Under the pieces are notes generated by a model. That model had not been told where the DNA came from. It saw only the letters and a program-made list of their open reading frames with translations, and made no database searches. 64,000 bases of DNA from Octopus bimaculoides (taxonomy: Eukaryota). The stretch lies in assembly GCF_001194135.2 (NCBI RefSeq), contig NC_068982.1, positions 175,910,007 through 175,974,006 of the forward strand, given 5' to 3'. This document shows positions 3,545 to 52,835 of the stretch, in pieces; position 1 is the stretch's first letter, and each line of letters opens with the position of its first letter. The position numbers were made by a program, and so were the translations under genes.

Positions 3545-3742
3545 TGGTTTCAAATTTTGACAGAAGGCCAGCAATTTTGGGAGAGGAGTAAGTCAATTAC
3601 ATCGACCCCAGTACTTGAGTGGTTCTTACTTTATTCATCCCGAAAGGATGATAGGTAAAGTCGACCTCGGCGGAATTTGAACTCAAAACATAATGCCGCT
3701 AAGCATTTTGCCCGGCATGCTAACGACTGTGCCAGTTCGCCG
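3545..3742 (-). mobile_element. SINE family A, short-tail subtype
   Basis: Reverse complement of head and core, ending …CTCCCAAAATTGCTGGCCTTCTGTCAAAATTTGAAACC. Confidence 0.8.
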
Positions 3743-6068
3743 CCTTATCAATCTATAGATATTACAAAATCTTTAACAGAGACAGAGCCAAAATTTATTA
3801 TTCTTGCTACGAGAATTTTTGCTTGTTCTATTAATCATTTCACTGGCAAAATAACACAACAACAATTACTCGGTATCTTTTCCTACCTGCTACCGAGAGG
3901 TAATATTTATGTTCACTTAAACGTGGTTGTTTTGTTAGAACAAACTATACTGCGGTAGATACCACGAGAGAACCTCTCATATCGGCTTTTGGTGCAAAAT
4001 GCACTCTTATTTATTATCGCTAGTGGGGAGATAGATATCTGCTACCTCCAGCACATAGACCACCAGATCATGTGGATTTAACCTTGCTTGGTCTTGTCAA
4101 TCACAGACGCTCGACTGCTAGAGATAGCAGCAACTCATCTCCCCACCAGTGATATATAGAAAAACAGTGATTAACCAGATGGCTGTCTCCTTAACTATTC
4201 TCGAAATTATTGGTTCCACTGCTCTTAGCGCAGTGGAAAGCAATTAGAATTACAATTTTATAAATTTCAAATGTCCAGAGAGGCAATTTCTAAAAATCTG
4301 TCCATTCGTTTCTCAAAACAATCCAATGAGGCTATTTTAGAACAAAAAAGGCGACATTTTACAAAATGTGGCCCATCACCACCGTGCTTTTATATAATTT
4401 AAACTTATCCAGAAACTTTAATTTTATTCAAAGACACCACACATCAAAAATATTTGAATTTTAGAGTTCATACAGGCGCACTTCAAATTAATTACTGTAT
4501 AATCTCCCGCGCCGCCACGTTTTCCTTACAACTACTAACTTTGTTCGTTTTTGGGTAAACACTTTTTCGTCCTCATTTCCGAACTTCATTTGGCCACACT
4601 GAAAATCTATCAACATATTTTTTTACTATGCTGAGTTATCTCCACTATCCTGTTTGACTTTCACGCCCGCGCTCTTATTTTACTGGCCTGTTGTTTGGAA
4701 ATACGTATTATTAAAAAAAAAAAAAAAAAACTCCTCGCCAAATTCTTGTCGATTTCTTTTAATCTAAGACTACTAATTTTTATAATCATCGTCTTAAATA
4801 ATTTTTGTTATAAATGTCTTTTATTGTTCACTATACACAAACTCATTGACTCTTCTTTTCTCCTCTTCCTCATCTTAACCGTAGTAGGAGCGACATATCT
4901 TACATATAGAAAACTCTGAATTCAAATGTCTGCTGTCTTATGGGTCTCTTGGGTTGGGAAAGATTAGATGGAATAAATACCTTGATGTAAAACCACTCAA
5001 CTTTAGTCTGGTCATCTCATCTTTTTGTGCTGTTGAAGACCCTTAGTTTCCTAAATAAAAGTGGTTTGCGTATAGTGCAATTTTAGTTACTTATTGATCC
5101 CTTCAAGGCATCGAAACTGCTAGAATCTTTTGACGGGGGCTAAATTTTAGTTTCTTCTATCTTTTACGCGTTCCATCCTCTTTCCTTGTCTTACGAAATA
5201 CCGTCTGTTGTAAAAGGTTAAAATGTCCTTCCAAGTCTCGTATACATCCAAAACCCACAATCCAACCCTATTAAGACAATTTGCAGGCTGTGCAATGCGC
5301 ATGGCTTGCAAGTTCCCACCTTCTTAAATCTGGTAGTGCGCAGAGTTCTTTGCTAAATTTTGCAGAATACAACCGTTCGTTACACCTCAACTCTTTAAAT
5401 AGCACTCCTAAAAGTAAAGCTACCACTTTTCTGTGTTTCACTTCCTATTCCACAAGGCACACACATGCGAGCGCATGCGCACACCACCGCATTCAATCCA
5501 TACTCCAGATCATTTTTAACACAATCACTACCCTTCTCTTTCTTTCGTCCTCTCTCTTCTATCTAAACAAATCCATAGTATTACACAATAGTGTATCATG
5601 TTCTAATGAAGGTACTCTCACCGATCCTGCCAGCTACCGGCCTATTTATCTCTTTTAAAATGTCACAAATTTTATAGTATTATAAAATTACTTCTTGCAT
5701 TACTTTCTGTCTCAACTCTTTTTAGTCATCACTAACTCTGTCCCCTTGAACATACCTCGAAAATATATTTCGATTAGTATATGATGACAACCTACTTTGC
5801 TGCAACAACGCCAGGATACAGTCACTTTGCATATTAAGGAAACGCACACTGCACATCCTCCGTCATTCCCACAGTCAGTGAGATGTTTGACAGTTTGGGA
5901 AAGCCTCTCTTGTAGCTCCATGCAATTATAATTATTATCTAACATTCATTTTAAATTTGCGTTTTTTTTACAAATTGACAGATCATCGTAGGTCTTACCT
6001 AATAAATGGAGATTCTGGTCATACCCATTCCTATACTTAATCAGCATGAAAATAATATCGCTAAAATC

Positions 6069-13080: not shown

Positions 13081-14118
13081 AAGAGCAAAAATATACTCGC
13101 CTCCTCCAAATTCATTCGATTAGTGATATAGTGATGGCTTGCAAAGTACAGCGAGCTTATATGTGGTTGGTCGGTATTCAAGAATTAGCAGCCAACTCAC
13201 CCTTAAATCAGTACCGTATCATCTTAAAAAAAGGAAAGGAACATATAAAATGATGTTGTCCTAAATGCTGCTTAAAAGGAGACGGAAACGCCAAGAATGC
13301 TTTTGGTCATGGGTTTGCTCGACTGGAGTTGACCTGGAAATAAACAACAACAACTCGCCTAAACCTTTTACTCTCCTCACCTCTTTCATTTTAAAGATGT
13401 AGTGCTTTCTTGTCTTGATCTCCCGCGATGATGAAGTTATGGATCAGTGTGGTTAGACAAAAACTCCACTCCCTAAACAGCAACGGATCTTCAAAGAAGG
13501 GTGCAGCTACGCGAACAACCGGAGAATCGCGACATTTCTTAGCTATAGTACACCGTATGAGCTCTTTACAAGCGAAGAAACTAAAGAAGAGTTGTATTTC
13601 ATTGTCGTTGACCTGCATGATAGTTCAACTGCCTCAACGAAAGCCATCTGTTTGTGGCTCTAAGAATTTTCGGCCTTGACTTGTGCTGGGAAAAAAAGCG
13701 CAAAACGTAACAACACGTTCAATTTTATAGTCACAGAAGCCGTTAAACTAGCGACGAAAAGAAAAAAATGAAGCAGGGTGGCCACTGACTTCAAACAATT
13801 CAGGTTTCATGTTAGTATATATCCTTATCCAATATGCATTTACAAAACTTGTAAATAGATAAATACTTTCACATGTATATACATACTCTATTAGACGGCC
13901 TCAGGGCGCACATATACCAAACTCCTCACCAAATAAGCTGGGGTTGCTGGTTTAGTTACTGATGGCTCAACCGTCATTTACCGACATATATGGTTACCAG
14001 TAGAAGGTCTCTAGTCATCAACAGCGTAACCCCCCCCCCCCNNNNNNNNNNNNNNNNNNNNNNNNNNNNNNNNNNNNNNNNNNNNNCACACACACACACA
14101 TACACACATACACACTGG

Positions 14119-14348
14119 GCGGCGAGCTAGCAGAAACGTTAGCACGTCGGGCGAAATGCTTAGCGGTATTTCGTCTGCCGCTACGCTCTGAGTTCAAATT
14201 CCGCCGAGGTCGACTTTGCCTTTCATCCTTTCGGGGTCGATAAAATAAGTACCACTACGCACTGGGGTCGATATAATCGACTTAATCCGTTTGTCTGTCT
14301 TTGTTTGTCCCCTCTGTGTGTAGCCCCTTGTGGGTAGTAAAGAAATAA
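14119..14348 (+). mobile_element. SINE family A, intact young copy
   Basis: Complete head, core and long tail; 12-bp TSD CATACACACTGG at 14107-14118 and 14351-14362. Confidence 0.92.
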
Positions 14349-16199: not shown

Positions 16200-16410
16200 A
16201 ATGGTTTCAAATTTTGGCACTAAACCAGCAGTACTAGGGGAGGGAATAAGTCGATTATATTGAGTCCAGTGCTTAACTGGTACTTATTTTATCAATCCAG
16301 GAAGAGTTAAAGGCAAAATCGATTTCAGTGGTATTTGATTTCAGAACGTAAAGAGCCTGAAGAAATGCTGCTAAGCATTTTGTCCGAGGCGCTAACGAAT
16401 CCATCAGCTT
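16200..16410 (-). mobile_element. SINE family A, short-tail subtype, diverged
   Basis: Reverse complement of head and core recognisable. Confidence 0.7.
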
Positions 16411-16790
16411 ATTGCTTTATATCCTGAAGATCAAAACAAAAGCAATCAGAGTAATGTGCAAATTATGCTCGCCTATAGTATTCAAGTATACAGATGGAAT
16501 GATTTGAGTTTAGGAAAAGAATGTATCAAGTAGACGTTAATATAATGATAACGGTAAAAAGTGAAGAAAACAGAAATATCATTATTTCTAAATTTCTCTA
16601 AAGGAGACTACGGCAGCAGTATTGGGTATTAATATCTATCGCCGAGCTAACATGGCAGCCTAGAGAAATAGGACGAATGCTACCGTTGATTAGCTCCGAG
16701 AGGCCATCACCTCTAGCTAGCTACGTGACACACAAATCTGTGTTCATTACAATCTTCGAACAGGGGACGTCATCAGCTTCCTTTTGCAAC

Positions 16791-16849
16791 TTCAGCATCC
16801 ACAGACCAGTTTCGGGGTATTTGTCCCTTATCAATGTGGAGTAGCTGAA
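16791..16849 (-). ncRNA. Putative minimal type-I hammerhead ribozyme, U3:A8 core variant
   Basis: CCACA-UUGAUAA-GGG ACAAAUAC CCC-GAAAC UG GUC^UGUGG; stem I CCACA/UGUGG extended by UUCAGC/GCUGAA; stem III ACUGGU self-complementary with wobbles. Confidence 0.7.
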
Positions 16850-17009
16850 CCCAGCAGGCGTCGCTGTTGACTGTCTGTACGAAGGTTTATTCATATATAT
16901 TCAGTGGAACACATCCACTGATTTTCAAAAATAGAAATCAGTGGATGTATTCCACTGAATATATATAAATAAACACTCGGACAGACAGTCAACAGCGACG
17001 TCTGCTGGG

Positions 17010-17068
17010 TTCAGCTACTCCACATTGATATGGGACAAATACCTCGAAACCGGTCTGTGGATGTTGAA
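17010..17068 (+). ncRNA. Mirror copy of the hammerhead in the right arm (A9 to U substitution)
   Basis: CCACA-UUGAUAU-GGG ACAAAUAC CUC-GAAAC CG GUC^UGUGG; perfect palindromic stem III ACCGGU; predicted cleavage after 17055. Confidence 0.6.
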
Positions 17069-17949
17069 GCAGCAAGGGGAATCAGATGACGTCCCCTGTT
17101 CGAAGATTGTAATGGACACAGATTTGTGTGTCACGTAGCTAGCTAGAGGCAATGGCCTTGCGGAGCGAATCAACGGCAGCATTCGTCTTATTTCTCTAGG
17201 CTGCCATGTTAGCTTGGCGATAAATAATAATCAGTGAAGAAAGCGTTTTTGATCTATAGCGAACTAGTAAGAAACCTAAAGACACTACATTCCAATTATA
17301 TCTTTAAACTAATACCTGTGGTTATTGAGGTTCTTTGTTACTTCACTAACTGCTTCAATACTGAACTTGAGAATCTAGGCTTCGCAAGACTACAATTGAC
17401 AACCCATTTGAAAATTACAATTACACACCACTAATGGAACTTTAAAAATACGTAAAGCATTCCGTAAGTTTATCCTAAACTATATGTACACACCATACGT
17501 GCAGACATGCACATGCAGACAACGTATACACTTTGATAAATTAAAACATACAGATTTAGTAACTCAATATGTGTGCAAACATAGATTCGCATACATATAT
17601 AAATAAAGCTTGCATACATATATACATGTGTAAAAACAGACAAACAAAAAATTCGGTAAATCTGCACTACTGTCTCGCTTTTTCGACATCTAGGAATATA
17701 GGTTAGGAATTTCTAATATATATATTATACCCGGGATAACTACATTGGTGATGAAAATGATGCGCAAAATGCAAGGATTATAAATGGATTCTCAGTGAAA
17801 AAATCGAACCGGTCTATGCATGTGTACTCTCTCTCTCTATATATATATGTATGTACACAATGTAAATATATTAGCAATATTATTAAAAAAGAACGTGAAT
17901 TAACTTGCAGAATTTCTAAATGGTTACACGGTTATTTGGTCAACTGTTC

Positions 17950-18302: not shown

Positions 18303-20926
18303 TCAACTGTTCCTACATGTTCATTGATAGATAACCATAGTTTCACTTCAAAACATTGAATACGAAAGTTATGAGGCTAAATAACTCTGTTTTACTTGAC
18401 AACCAGAAAGTTTGATATAAGAGTATCATTTACGACTAAGAAAATCGTTGTTTTAATGAAAACGCTGATGAAAATGTTTACTTTGATGAATATATCTTAT
18501 TTAGTCTAAACGAGAAACGGATTTCGTTGATTGATCTGAGTCAAATCTATTTTCATTAAGAAGTTTATGTCTCTAATTAATTTATATGAACTTGCAACAA
18601 AAAAATGCACCTGGTATTAGTTAACACAACTTCAGTGAGCCATAAATTGGAAAACAACTTAACGTAATATTCCGCGGCACGCAACCAAATTTCAACTGCC
18701 TCATATCTTTTTCTGGTGTATCGACAAATCAATACAACAGATTTCAGTTTGAAACTAAAACTGAAACTGAAAATGTTTGCGATATTTGTGGCTCAACCTC
18801 AGCGACTTGGAGATCGTGAGCCTCATTAACATGGTCAGGATCTTAGTGTTTAAAACCAGTAAAAAAAATGTGAAAACTACTGGAGGAAACGTGATTCGTG
18901 ACCAAGAGAAAAATAATTATTCCCGGTGGTTAGGCGCCACCACAATGACCAGTAGGCCAAAGACATCATCAGCAATGACTCCAGCAAGTATATGCTATAT
19001 TTAGTATAAGATTATTTACAAGATAACGCGGGAACCTCAACGCTGTCGTTCGACGTGCTACAAATGGCAGTCGAACATCCCTCGAATTATTCCCTACCGT
19101 CTCAAAAAAGTAGGACTCATTGCATAATGTGGTCCTAGATACACTGCCTCCGTATATACAATGGTGTTTGTCTGCTAACATCCATTTACACGTTGGTTAT
19201 CACTAGTGTCGATCAAAAGATACTCATGGTAACGAACAGTCTAATCAAACCCGGAACTTCGTGTTCGCCACTGAACTCATCAGAATTCTTAATCGCACAA
19301 CCTTGCCTACTATGATTACATTTTACAGTTTAGTCACACAATCATTGTGCACCACTATCGTTATTCAACCGAATCAACCACTAAACAATTAGTTGCCTTT
19401 GTTTTTTTAGTTTGCTCGATTAATTAATTGATTACTTGCATGTATTTCTACTCTGATGTGTGAGGGGAAAAAAACTAAAGCTAGGAACACCGTTTTTCTT
19501 TTAAATCAATGGTCACTAAGCAAAATAACAAACAAATAGATATTATATTTTGTTTCCCGGCATTTTGTTTTTGAACAAGTTATTAGTGCATTAATTCTGT
19601 TACCCCAATCTTATTCAATATGTCATGTAATGGCAGATTTACAAGCCTACAGAAAGGGGGAAATATGTTAGTTACGCAGTGAACGAACTACAATATAAAT
19701 ACGTTCCATAGCAACTCGATTTCTTTCAGATAGCAGTGGTTATAATAGTAGTGTAAAATAACAATTATATACTGAGAATGCATTTAAAAAGAATATTATT
19801 TGCACTCGTTAAATTTTCTTTATTAATAGTGGGTCAAATATTTTTTCCGATTATATAATGGACTGAAAGAGTAATAGTAGCTGTATTAACAACCCCGTTC
19901 AAAGATTCCTTTGGCTAAAGCCGTTCCAAGCCTAACTATTCTGTGAATTTTTAAGACAGTGTATATACGACTATATTATCCAATGTGTTCTATTTTTCAA
20001 AGATAGTTGTGAATGAATTGAGGGAGATCTTACTGATGTTTCTAGCTGATGAAATGACCAACTTACATTTGTTGGCTCATAGCAGGGGAGTTATCAAAAG
20101 TATTTATTCTTCTTGTTACTAGAATCATTATAGTAAACAATATTCCAAACACAGGGACTTTTCTCATTGTACAAGAAAAAAAGAAAATGCCTAAATTATT
20201 CTCAAGCGATCTGTCACGAAGCATTGACGCTGCGCAAATTATGTCCCCTGAAAATGAATATTCTACAGATATTCTCTCTATATATGGTGTATTTTTACGC
20301 TTGATCTAATGTCATCTGTTTTAATGAAGTCTAATAATTATGCGCTCCCTGCTTTCAATGGAGAAGAAAAATCAATGTCTCCTACTGTTTCATTGTTGAT
20401 GACCTGAAAATATAAGCCAGTAACATCAACAGAGCCAAATATCAATTTGACTCAGTAAAAAGTATATTCACGGGCCACTGGGATGGAATTATGCCAGAAC
20501 AAACACTTATTTGTATAATAAATTAAGATAGGACTAGAAACCAACCAGGATAAGGGAGAAAAATGTACTTTCTAACACATTTTTGCCTTAAACAATGATA
20601 ATTATAAATGCCTCGGTAAAGATGAAAATGTATCTTGCATGTTTATTGGAAACAAGGCTTGAGTGACCATTAACACCAAACTCAGAAATAAAGTATTTCC
20701 ATGCTACAAAAATCATTATCTCAATATATTTACAGAATAAGTTTTGGCATTAAGATTCGGAGTCGTGACTAGAATTTCAAGTACAGTCCTTTCTTTGGTA
20801 AAGAAAAAAGAAAATATACTTAAAATTGTTAGTAATGTTTGTGCTAATTGTACCACGGACAACTGATCTATCTAAAAGAAGAAACTTGTAGGACTAATAT
20901 CTTTCAATATTCATTTACAGTTTCAT

Positions 20927-21036
20927 CTGTCCTTACGTTCTGAGTTCAAATTCCGCCGAGGCCGACCTTGCCTTTCATCCTTTCGGGGTCGATAAATTAA
21001 GTACCAGTTGCGTCCTGGGGTCGATCTAATCGACTG
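20927..21036 (+). mobile_element. SINE family A core fragment
   Basis: TTCTGAGTTCAAATTCCGCCGAGGCCGACCTTGCCTTTCATCCTTTCGGGGTCGATAAATTAAGTACCAG. Confidence 0.8.
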
Positions 21037-21310
21037 TAATCATTTACAGCTTTTATCACTTTCGGTATTTTCTGATTTTAAAAACTACTGAAGATAACTT
21101 TCTTACTCGGGACCAATATTCTTTTCTACTCTAGGCACANNNNNNNNNNNNNNNNNNNNNNNNNNNNNNNNNNNNNNNNNNNNNNNNNNNNNNNNNNNNN
21201 NNNNNNNCCCTAGTACACAACTGGTACTTTATTTATCGATACCGAAAGGACGAAAGGCAAAGTCGACTCGGAGGAATTTGAACTCAGATGGTAAAGACAG
21301 ACGAAATACC

Positions 21311-21541
21311 TATTTCTTTACTGCCCACAAGGGGCTACACACAGAGGGGACAAACAAGGACAGACAAACGGATTAAGTCGATTATATCGACCCCAGTGCG
21401 TAACTGGTACTTAATTTATCGACCCCGAAAGGATGAAGGGCAAAGTCGACCTCGGCGGAATTTAAACTCAGAACGCAGTGGCAGACGAAATACCACTAAG
21501 CATTTCGCCAGACGTGCTAACGTTTCTGCCAGCTCGCCGCC
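21311..21541 (-). mobile_element. SINE family A, full-length long-tail copy, abutting an older minus copy (~21208-21310)
   Basis: Reverse complement of 14119-14348. Confidence 0.9.
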
Positions 21542-21875: not shown

Positions 21876-22002
21876 CTCCTAAAACGCCATAGAGTTCTTA
21901 TGGGAGATTTTCGCTAATCCAACATTTCGGAATATAGCTTCCAAATAGAATTTGAATGGAAAAATTCTCCTTAACAATCTCATTATTTCACGTGCATTTC
22001 AC

Positions 22003-22093
22003 GGGCATATGGCGTAGTGGTTAAAAGCGCGGGCTACTAACCCCAAGATTCCGAGTTCGATTCCAGGCAGTGACCTGAATAATAATAATAATG

Positions 22094-22124
<31 letters not shown>

Positions 22125-22325
22125 TAATAATAACAATAATAACAACAACAACATCGAAAAATACCTTAAGAATGAGAACCCAGGTTCGAAATTTCCCCAA
22201 GACACCTGATGAAGGCTGGAGGGTATATCAGCCGAAACGTTGTGTTAACAACAAACAAGATGAGGACAAATATCCGTCAATTGTAAATAATGTACATAAT
22301 TCCTCATCTCTTAAATACAGAACTG
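22003..22325 (+). mobile_element. tRNA-headed SINE with internal (AAT)n/(AAC)n and a hammerhead-bearing tail
   Basis: A box TGGCGTAGTGG (22010-22020), B box GAGTTCGATTCC (22053-22064); 6-bp direct flanks TTTCAC (21997-22002, 22326-22331); tail also present at 52735-52835. Confidence 0.85.
22201..22246 (+). ncRNA. Putative minimal type-I hammerhead ribozyme (Penelope-like)
   Basis: GACAC-CUGAUGA-A-GGCUGG AGGGUAUA UCAGCC-GAAAC GUU^GUGUU; stem I 5 bp, stem II 6 bp, palindromic AACGUU stem III; predicted cleavage after 22241. Confidence 0.75.
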
Positions 22326-24777: not shown

Positions 24778-25053
24778 GTATATATATACATACATATATA
24801 TATATATATANNNNNNNNNNNNNNNNNNNNNNNNNNNNNNNNNNNNNNNNNNNNNNNNNNNNNNNNNNNNNNNNNNNNNNNNNNNNNNNNNNNNNNNNNN
24901 NNNNNNNNNNNNNNNNNNNNNNNNNNNNNNNNNNNNNNACACACACACACACACACTAAATTACGCAAAAATGAAAATAACACTGATATCTCATTTTAGC
25001 AGATATATTTACCAAAATTGCAGAAAAATATCTTGAAATACTAAAGAGTTAAT

Positions 25054-26066
25054 TTATTCAATAAAATCACCATTGGCTTCAACCACGGTCAGCAGTCGAC
25101 TTCGGAATGTTCTGCAACTCTTCTGGACGGTCTCCTTGTTTAAGTTGGTGAATGCTGCCATAATCCTTGCCTTCAGTTCATCTTTGGTGTTACAAGGGGT
25201 TTTGTTGGTCTCTCGCTCAACTTCGCCCCACGCATAATAATCAAGGGGCTGCAGTCTGGGGAGTTAGGTGGCCAGATGTTAGGAGTGATGTAATCGCAGA
25301 AATTGTCTGACAGCCACGACTGGATTCTCCTGCTTGTGTGGCATGGTGCAGAGTCCTGTTGCCAGACATAGAGTCTTCCAGCAGCCATCCTCTTGACACA
25401 AGGCAGCACTACTTCCCCCAGGCACTTGATGTAGGCTTCCGTGTTGACTTTGAGGCCGTATGAGAAGATGAATAGAGGCATAACATCGTCATCATTAGTG
25501 ATCACTCCAAACAACATGATGTTGACTAGATGTTTGATTTCTATCACTTTCAGTACATGTTTTGGGGACACGGCAAGCCAACGGTTGTTATGTGTATTCA
25601 CCTGATCCTGGCAGAAATTTTACTCGTCTGAGAGAAACCAAAGCATGTTCGGTCGTAGCGCGGTCTTTCCTCTTGTCTTTGATGGCTTGGGATAAAAATT
25701 GACCCTTTCTCATTTGTATGAGGAATACCGAGTGTCTTCATGCACTACCTGCCTGATACAAAACTCAGACACTCCCATGTCCCTGGCGATTGACCTGATC
25801 GACTTGGTGGGATCGTTGTCAATCATGGCCTGGATCTCACCAACAAATTCAGGAGTTCTTTTCTTATTAGAACGATCAGAGTGAGTTTTCCGAGTTGCTG
25901 TACCTTTGTAATCACTACTAGACTCATCCAACTCTTTCCAAATCCTCTGCACTCTCCCCAGATTGACACCCAAACACTCTGAAATGTTCGTATTAGAGCC
26001 TCCGGCATGAATGTCAAGCAGTACAACATGTCGTTTCCAAATTTCTGGCTGAGTGAACTGTGTCAT
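25054..26066 (-). pseudogene. Tc1/mariner DD37D (maT-type) transposase, near full length, disrupted
   Basis: MTQFTQPEIWKRH…HTH-like region…WQQDSAPCHTS…WPPNSPDCSP(fs)LDYYAWG…ANGDFIE*; 37 residues between the QQD and PLD aspartates; stop near 25710, frameshifts incl. -1 near 25245. Confidence 0.9.
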
Positions 26067-27739
26067 AGTGCTGTTTTTTCTCACTTACGGTGCCCAACTG
26101 ACCCTACCATACTTTAATGTCGACAAAATAAAAAAAAACAATGCACATGGGCGAAATTAAAAATATAAAATATACGACGGACGTCTTTCACTTTCCACCT
26201 ACCTAATCCACTCATAAGGCTTTGGTCGGCCCGAGGATATAGTAGAAGACACTTACCCAAGGTGCCACGCAGTGAAATTGAACCCAGAACCAAGTAGTTG
26301 CGAAGCAAGCTTCTTACCACAGAGGCCACACCTGCACTTATGTTTACAAGTCTATAAAATAATTTTCATAATATATGTCACCAGTAAGAAATGGCGTCGA
26401 AATATTTGGCTATAATCTCTTCCAAAAGGTATAACCTTGAGCTTATGTTTAGAAATGTCTGTCCTCAAAGTCTTAGACCTTATGATAGAAAAAACAAAAT
26501 TTATGATTAAGGCGATGAACTGGTGGAATGGTTAGCATATCGACAAGATTTTTTGCGGAATTCCTTCCGGCTCTTTAAGTTCTGTGTTCAATACTCACGC
26601 AGGTTAGTTTTGACCTTCATCCTTTCGAGATCGATAAAATAAAGTACCAGTCAAGTACTAGCGTCGATGTAACCGAATTTCTCACTCTCCTCAAAATTGC
26701 TAGCCTTGTGCCAACTTTAAAAAGAATTATTATTACTATTAAAGTGGTGAGCTGGCAGGATCGCGTCGGATAAAATGCTTAGTGGCGTTTCTTCCGACTT
26801 GCCGAGGTCGATTTTGCCTTTCATCCCTCCAAGCTCGATAAAATAAGTACTAGTCAAATACACGGTTCGGTTTAATGAATTTGCCCCTTCCTTGAAAATT
26901 GCTAGTCTTGTGTCAAAATTAGAAAGAATTATTGTTTTTCGCCGAAGCTGAACATGTTTTGGACACTCCATGAGTTTGTGTCTCGTTTTCCTTTTTAAAA
27001 ATCTATTTATGTTGCTTATATTGTTCTGCTTTGTTTCTTAGTTGACCAGAACCATAAAGGACTGATTAACAGTCTTTGTTATTTATTCTATGAGGTCAAA
27101 TTTTAAAAGAATGAAAACTTTTTCGAAACAGAGAAAATTCAAAATGTCGTTGTCTTTGTCAAACAGTCAGTAAGAAAGAAAAGTAGGAAATGAAATCCTC
27201 TTTCGCAGTCATCTCCTCCCACACAATACTGTAAGACGTGAAATTAATTAAAAATTGCAGCAGTAGTGTCAGTAGCACCAACAACAATAATAAACTTAGC
27301 AACAACAGTAGAAGCAATCAGAACAGTGACAAGTCAAGCATATATCATCATAAACCATCTGCAAATCTACCCTGCCAGTAAGAAGTTATAATAGTAACCT
27401 CAACGACAATATTAGCAATACCAGCAGTTGTAAAACACAGCAAAAGATCTTTCTTTTGCTAAGATCAAAAATCTGTCCGATTTCATCCCGTGAAACGATA
27501 AGTGTGAACGTTTAAAAGAGACAGAAATACATATCAACAGTCCAGAATATAGAAAAATTATGTTCAATAAACTACGACATGTTTTAAATTAAACATAAAG
27601 GAAAACAATTCTGTTTAGATATCTATCAACAGAAAGACAAATTAGAAGCTGAATCCATTTTAAAGAACAAATGGCAAGACATCAGTTTTGTGACACATGC
27701 CCATAAGTTCACATATATTTCAGAAGCACTCCACCGTCA

Positions 27740-49727: not shown

Positions 49728-49940
49728 GGGCTGTGAACTGGCGGAATTGTTAGCAAGCCGGGCAAAATGCTTAGCGTTATTTCGTCCGTCTTTACGTTCT
49801 GAGTTCAATTTCTGCCGCCGTCTAGTTTGTCCTTTATCCTCTCGGGGTCGATAAAATAAGTACCACTCAAGTTCTGGGGTCGATATAATCGACTTACCCC
49901 CAGCCCCGAACATGTTGGCCCTGTGTCAAAATTTGAAACC
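49728..49940 (+). mobile_element. SINE family A, short-tail subtype
   Basis: Head, core and …CTTACCCCCAGCCCCGAACATGTTGGCCCTGTGTCAAAATTTGAAACC. Confidence 0.8.
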
Positions 49941-52734: not shown

Positions 52735-52835
52735 CGGAATGTTGTGTTAACAAAAAACAAGATGAGGACAAATATCCGTCAAATGTAAACAATGTAAATA
52801 ATGTACATAATTTCTCGTCTCTTAAATATAGAACT
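52735..52835 (+). mobile_element. Isolated 3' tail of the hammerhead SINE (cf. 22233-22325)
   Basis: GTGTTAAC…CAAGATGAGGACAAATATCCGTCAA…CTTAAATATAGAACT. Confidence 0.85.

Follow-up and report, generated by a model that had tools for sequence, protein, structure and literature searches.

A head-to-head pair of type-I hammerhead motifs with a U3:A8 core pair, probably left by the insertion of a small retroposon

Introduction

A long inverted repeat in a 64,000-nt stretch of DNA (hereafter the window) carries a hammerhead-like motif in each of its arms. This raises the question of whether the motifs descend from a genuine ribozyme and, if so, what kind of element placed two copies of it back to back. 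An initial annotation had read the locus as a Tc1/mariner-style MITE, bounded by TA, with a compensatory change in the hammerhead core. The window is metazoan nuclear DNA with ~36% G+C and dozens of microsatellites. It belongs to a draft assembly, in which a run of N (assembly gap) at ~24810-24940 has CA/TA microsatellites on either side.

Several published systems bear on the question. Newt, Penelope-like element (PLE) and many other metazoan hammerheads typically have a short palindromic helix III and act as dimers (PMC4209133; PMC6765202), and minimal hammerheads have been described in pairs that lie on opposite strands at a distance of ~100-700 bp (Cervera and de la Pena 2014, PMC4209133). 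Retrozymes are regarded as non-autonomous elements that depend on PLEs (PMC7761336; bioRxiv 10.64898/2026.07.22.740005). PLE insertions include cases in which an inverted, 5'-truncated copy adjoins the PLE, with a one-sided tail of 30-40 bp and a TSD of variable length (PMC8557442); such a one-sided tail is frequent (PMC8557442, PMC11167929). Purified PLE protein cuts and elongates the top as well as the bottom strand, and reverse transcription starts at two internal sites whose interval corresponds to the tail (PMC11167929). For one PLE hammerhead, cleavage was seen only with the protein present (PMC11167929).

Two units joined at their 5' ends

The inverted repeat consists of two 297-nt arms that are 91% complementary and separated by a 10-nt spacer (Table 1). 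The arms had been described as ~285 bp long and flanked by TA. They are real and somewhat longer, but TA forms no boundary: the dinucleotides are literally present at 16637-16638 and 17221-17222, and the inverted repeat continues past them on both sides with 10 of 12 further bases matching (ATTAATATCTAT versus ATTATTATTTAT). The TA at the arm ends is just a common dinucleotide of an AT-rich end. The sense strands diverge from the centre, as the initial annotation had also held, such that the 5' ends of both units meet and the 3' ends point to the flanks. A hairpin at the inner end appears in both the minimum-free-energy and the centroid prediction of each arm, and the predicted folds of the sense RNAs are more stable than those of shuffled sequences (z = -2.75 for the left arm and z = -3.47 for the right arm).

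Table 1. Coordinates of the features discussed, numbered from the first base of the window
Feature	Position	Strand	Remarks
Candidate TSD, left copy (AGTGAAGAAA)	16560..16569	+	Exact 10-mer
One-sided extension, possible PLE-type tail	16570..16627	-	58 nt, between left TSD copy and left arm
Left arm	16628..16924	-	Copy 1 of the ~297-nt unit; sense is the minus strand, running from the centre to the left
Left-arm type-I hammerhead, intact core	16791..16849	-	U3 = 16834, A8 = 16829, A9 = 16828, C17 = 16804
Predicted hairpin UCAGUGGA-UGUGU-UCCACUGA	16901..16921	-	Inner (5') end of left unit
Spacer TCAAAAATAG	16925..16934		10 nt; junction of the head-to-head units
Right arm	16935..17231	+	Copy 2 of the ~297-nt unit; sense is the plus strand, running from the centre to the right
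Predicted hairpin	16938..16958	+	Inner (5') end of right unit
Right-arm hammerhead, damaged core UUGAUAU	17010..17068	+	U3 = 17025, A8 = 17030, U9 = 17031, C17 = 17055
Candidate TSD, right copy (AGTGAAGAAA)	17233..17242	+	Repeats the left 10-mer
PLE "minimal"-type hammerhead, canonical C3:G8	22201..22246	+	GACAC CUGAUGA A GGCUG-GAGGGUAUAU-CAGCC GAAA CG U U GUGUU

Both arms end within 10 nt of a common inner position. This shared end requires two full-length copies, snap-back during cDNA synthesis, or a later palindromic duplication at the DNA level; independent 5' truncation of the two copies would not produce equal inner ends, and the shared end is thus the chief difficulty for the insertion reading preferred below. 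No further copy of the arm was found within the 64-kb window. At the locus itself there is no tandem array, and no direct repeat occurs within or between the arms.

Other sequence features of the arms and their neighbourhood were recorded as well. Weak pol III A-box-like (AGTGG, 16940-16944) and B-box-like (GTTCGAA, 17098-17104) cores lie ~160 nt apart in the right arm, the former at the inner end and the latter in mid-unit, and both are mirrored in the left arm; each agrees with the consensus at ~6 of 9 positions, which is near chance. A match of 15 of 17 bases to the 3' half of the ribozyme at 17807-17823 was considered as a further hammerhead and rejected, as inspection showed none there. 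An interspersed repeat of ~230 bp is present in at least 15 copies of 70-94% identity in the 64 kb (1-189, 3585-3747, 14118-14347, 16243-16397, 20921-21041, 21311-21541, 49729-49896 and others), one of them ~230 bp to the left of the foldback.

A type-I hammerhead motif in each arm

A hammerhead motif is present on the minus strand of the left arm, where the initial annotation had placed it, and a mirror copy is present on the plus strand of the right arm. The left copy reads UUCAGC UAC UCCACA UUGAUAA GGGA CAAAUA CCCC GAAA CUGG UC/UGUGGA U GCUGAA, the slash marking the predicted cleavage between 16804 and 16803 at a GUC site. Helix Ia comprises 6 bp (UCCACA/UGUGGA) and is followed by an internal loop of 3+1 nt and a 6-bp distal helix, and the open end of the hammerhead lies in helix I, which corresponds to type-I topology. 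Thus the distal extension of stem I that had been reported is present, but the inner helix has 6 bp rather than the 5 bp (CCACA/UGUGG) originally assigned to it. Helix II of the left copy consists of three G-C pairs and an A.C apposition, closed by loop 2 (CAAAUA), and helix III has 2 bp with a 2-nt loop, which together form the hexamer ACUGGU. The left core (UUGAUAA, G12 A13 A14, A15.1/U16.1 and C17) is canonical throughout except for U3:A8.

The right copy differs from the left at four positions: A9 is replaced by U (17031), a C in helix II by U (giving G.U), helix III reads ACCGGU, and a C in the distal part of helix I is replaced by U (again giving G.U). The palindromic stem III AC(C/U)GGU and the GUC site that had been noted can accordingly be read in both arms, with ACCGGU being a perfect palindrome. 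The core UUGAUAA, previously given for each arm, is found in the left one; that of the right arm is UUGAUAU and departs from the conserved core at A9 in addition to U3:A8.

We compared the motif with N79, an engineered form of the Schistosoma mansoni Sm1 hammerhead (GCAGG UAC AUCCAG CUGAUGA GUCC CAAAUA GGAC GAAA ... UC CUGGAU U CCACUGC; PMC12550524). Aligned column for column, the 6-bp helix Ia, the UAC/U internal loop, the four positions of helix II and the CAAAUA loop 2 all match. The UAC/U and CAAAUA elements form the loop-loop contact of metazoan type-I hammerheads, and their presence here marks the motif, as judged from its sequence, as a genuine type-I hammerhead and a true relative of the canonical animal hammerhead. 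With the canonical metazoan type-I hammerheads (Schistosoma Sm-alpha/Sm1, newt satellite 2 and non-LTR retrozymes) the locus also has in common GAAA, the GUC site and a short palindromic helix III that needs a double-hammerhead dimer. It differs from them in having U3:A8 instead of C3:G8 and an A.C mismatch as the top pair of helix II.

The features that match Sm1/N79 were used in none of our descriptors. The descriptor called for helix I, [C/U]UGAN[G/A]A with positions 3 and 8 being C:G or U:A, a helix II no shorter than 3 bp, GAAA, a helix III that is palindromic, and H17. A relaxed-motif scan of this kind, which the initial annotation had proposed, returned two motifs in the window, or three when A9 was relaxed. 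None of 300 dinucleotide-preserving shuffles gave any match with a 5-bp helix I, which, together with the likeness to Sm1 outside the descriptor, indicates that the motif is not due to chance.

Rfam returned nothing at gathering thresholds for the whole window, and its hammerhead models gave nothing at E<=10 at the locus or on a 91-nt slice of it. The matches at the locus up to E<=10 were sub-threshold long-hairpin miRNA models only, such as MIR447 (90.7 bits; gathering score, 200). As a control, the minimal hammerhead at 22201-22246, the core of which is canonical, was missed by Rfam too. The negative result therefore carries little weight, since the models do not cover variants without helix III. 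That the hammerhead likeness arose by chance in an inverted repeat of unrelated origin, as the lack of a fitting Rfam model and a core off consensus at two positions (three in the right arm) might suggest, is hardly credible given the shuffles, a loop 1, loop 2 and set of helix lengths identical to Sm1 (chance ~1e-6 by our own estimate) and two core departures that are exactly the known isosteric 3:8 pair (PMC3088659).

The core variant and the need for a dimer

U3:A8 occurs in both arms, and the source element must therefore have had this pair before the duplication. The initial annotation had interpreted the joint C3U and G8A change as a compensatory swap, and U3:A8 is indeed an isosteric replacement of the C3-G8 pair. 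Natural U3/A8 covariation was reported in 2011, with activity in vitro (Perreault et al., PMC3088659), and U3-A8 is also known from the hammerheads of the Cercyon PLE of S. mansoni (Cervera and de la Pena 2014; ~1,300 hits; PMC4209133). The novelty implied for the locus does not hold, since U3:A8, pairs on opposite strands and inverted PLE copies have all been published (PMC3088659, PMC4209133, PMC8557442). No match to the exact sequence was found in the literature.

A monomer cannot close a helix III of 2 bp whose loop has 2 nt, and the source element would accordingly have needed a double hammerhead for cleavage, formed in trans or within tandem or multimeric transcripts. In an unconstrained two-strand fold, the right-arm ribozyme was predicted to form such a double hammerhead with a 6-bp intermolecular ACCGGU helix III; the minimum free energy predicted for this homodimer is -41.9 kcal/mol, compared with 2 x -17.8 kcal/mol for two monomers. 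The ACUGGU of the left arm would form two G.U pairs, and no such duplex is present in its minimum-free-energy structure. The predicted duplex agrees with the earlier statement that a palindromic stem III is typical of the dimer-acting hammerheads of PLEs and metazoan retrozymes, which also fits the literature. The copies at the locus are inverted, not in head-to-tail tandem as in Sm1, newt satellites and retrozymes, and the locus itself thus cannot supply a dimer in cis or a circular RNA.

Origin of the head-to-head copies

Outside the arms, the 10-mer AGTGAAGAAA occurs on both sides. On the right it lies directly beside the arm; on the left, 58 extra bases separate it from the arm. A comparable flank match is found at 0.16% of window positions (empirical frequency 0.0016), a post hoc test that serves as a lead only. 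The 58-nt extension has no counterpart on the right, and the similarity of the extension or of either flank to the arms is at chance level.

The locus probably represents a small, non-coding hammerhead retroposon that inserted in one retrotransposition event, primed on both DNA strands, and is now dead and decaying. The retroposon would be of the metazoan SINE-like or non-LTR-retrozyme kind, which is thought to be mobilised by PLEs, and its dependence on a PLE is presumed. Its ribozyme would have been a canonical, tertiary-stabilised type-I hammerhead in which C3-G8 had been replaced by U3-A8. According to this model, a PLE-type RT-endonuclease would nick both target strands and prime reverse transcription on each, and the two cDNAs would grow toward each other to give head-to-head units with their 3' ends outward. 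The outcome would be a target duplication of variable length and, optionally, a tail restricted to one end. The geometry of the locus is the one that priming on both strands predicts, and the 10-bp flanking direct repeat argues for a retro-type insertion rather than a MITE.

The resemblance to PLEs comprises U3-A8 (as in Cercyon), a palindromic helix III with dimeric action, motif pairs on opposite strands, and inverted adjacent copies with outward 3' ends. The association with PLEs and metazoan retrozymes that had been drawn initially is thus in keeping with the literature. There are also differences. In PLE minimal hammerheads, helix III and the loop-loop contacts are usually absent, helix II is longer and a bulge follows A9, whereas the locus has full canonical loops. 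The putative tail of 58 nt exceeds the published 30-40, and the locus has no adjacent RT or GIY-YIG ORF: no match to either was found among ten ORFs scanned, and there is no long non-repetitive ORF within ~8 kb. The ~300-nt unit lies within the size range of retrozymes and SINEs (PMC4209133; PMC7229834; PMC7761336). Metazoan non-LTR retrozymes consist of head-to-tail repeats of ~150-400 bp with a type-I hammerhead in each; the copies at the locus are not in tandem but inverted.

The minimal hammerhead at 22201-22246 suggests that PLE-type elements inhabit this genome. Its A9 is followed by a bulged base, its helix II has 5 bp, and it contains a G10.1-C11.1 pair and the palindrome ACGU. Just upstream, at ~21995-22075 and 22078-22153, lie a tRNA-like stretch (GGCGTAGTGGTTAAAAGCGCGGGCTACTAACCCCAAGATTCCGAGTTCGATTCCAGGCAGTG) and then an (AAT)n microsatellite. 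ARAGORN called no tRNA in the ~21995-22075 stretch, which may represent the head of a tRNA-derived SINE. The sequence that lies downstream of this hammerhead recurs as a partial copy (84%) at 52735-52835; the similarity starts at about the GAAAC/cleavage-site region, and the 5' half of the ribozyme is missing.

Searches for relatives of the inverted-repeat unit with a specific DNA pattern found none in metagenome or viral contigs, and spurious ORFs spanning the arms on both strands yielded no candidates. A relaxed U3:A8 plus CAAAUA pattern gave 20 matches in metagenome, genome and viral contigs; all were rejected as chance, since in none was a paired helix II combined with a helix I of more than four contiguous pairs.

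An unlikely alternative is a later inverted duplication, at the DNA level, of a single retroposed copy. It would have arisen at a break or stalled fork through fold-back priming or template switching, as a near-perfect palindrome with a short loop, and the arms would have diverged by 9% since then. The exact symmetry of the arms, 297 nt on each side of a 10-nt spacer, would be expected from snap-back synthesis, and short self-complementary sequence lies beside the centre in the form of the two inner-end hairpins. However, the centre of symmetry is the spacer and not the loop of either hairpin, the candidate 10-bp direct repeat around the whole structure would not be expected from a local palindromic duplication, and inverted adjacent copies are a documented product of PLE integration (PMC8557442).

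We regard as very unlikely the reading of the initial annotation, namely a foldback or MITE-type DNA transposon with ~290-bp TIRs, a Tc1/mariner-like transposase and TA duplication. The locus shares with foldback elements and long-TIR MITEs its long inverted arms, tiny spacer and lack of coding capacity; TA is literally present near both ends, and the window contains a Tc1/mariner-type transposase remnant at 25173-26084. But the inverted repeat extends beyond the TA, which is thus no terminus, the arms have no similarity to the remnant at ~25.1-26.1 kb or its surroundings (the one candidate partner compared), and there is no second copy in the 64 kb. The sole flanking direct repeat is 10 bp long and asymmetrically placed, which fits a retro-insertion better, and the arms contain a ribozyme unit of retroposon type. 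The arm termini are, we presume, also unlike the usual Tc1/mariner ends. The transposase itself is broken and lies on the minus strand as two ORFs, an HTH-like N-terminal and a DDE_3-like C-terminal one; its best protein matches, at no more than 62% identity, are crustacean, cephalopod and insect sequences.

Two further readings assign a present role to the hairpin. It is highly improbable, in our judgement, that the head-to-head dimer is the propagating form of a foldback family, in which divergent transcription would yield two sense ribozyme RNAs that dimerise in trans via ACCGGU and the read-through hairpin would feed small-RNA silencing. If this were true, a retrozyme lineage would have switched from a tandem to an inverted arrangement while carrying a tertiary-stabilised U3:A8 hammerhead. 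We likewise give very little credence to the idea that the long hairpin is the functional product (an endo-siRNA, miRNA or piRNA precursor) and the hammerhead incidental. A read-through transcript would fold into an imperfect hairpin of ~300 bp, and the sub-threshold Rfam matches mentioned above are to long-hairpin miRNAs, but all of these score far under gathering and are of a kind that any long inverted repeat would give, and the arms diverge by a neutral-looking 9% with uncompensated changes.

Decay of the copy

Between the arms, 27 of 297 positions are mismatched, and 18 of the mismatches are transitions. Four of 59 positions differ inside the ribozyme and 23 of 238 outside (p = 0.62). Comparison of the two ribozyme copies shows that three of the four differences are transitions that keep pairing via G.U, and one is the core change. 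The A9U in the right arm and substitutions as frequent inside the ribozyme as outside give the copy the appearance of a dead one, which we regard as the old, neutral remnant of a family that was once active. In either direction a transcript contains a single sense ribozyme, which read-through would enclose in the ~300-bp hairpin; the locus is therefore most likely inert and decaying.

Implications

The initial annotation was largely right in what it observed, including the ribozyme call, while its MITE interpretation and its sense of novelty are not borne out. The locus represents no new class of ribozyme or mobile element; it adds another case to a known kind of element, with a rare, already described core variant. 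Its value is modest, and lies in its being a clean natural case of a canonical hammerhead, with loop-loop contacts of the Sm1 type, in which C3-G8 is swapped to U3-A8. It also illustrates the head-to-head product that would be expected if a PLE-type enzyme primes both target strands, in an integration pathway that is poorly understood. Should the family turn out to be abundant in the source genome, it could provide a natural test of how tertiary contacts buffer changes in the hammerhead core.
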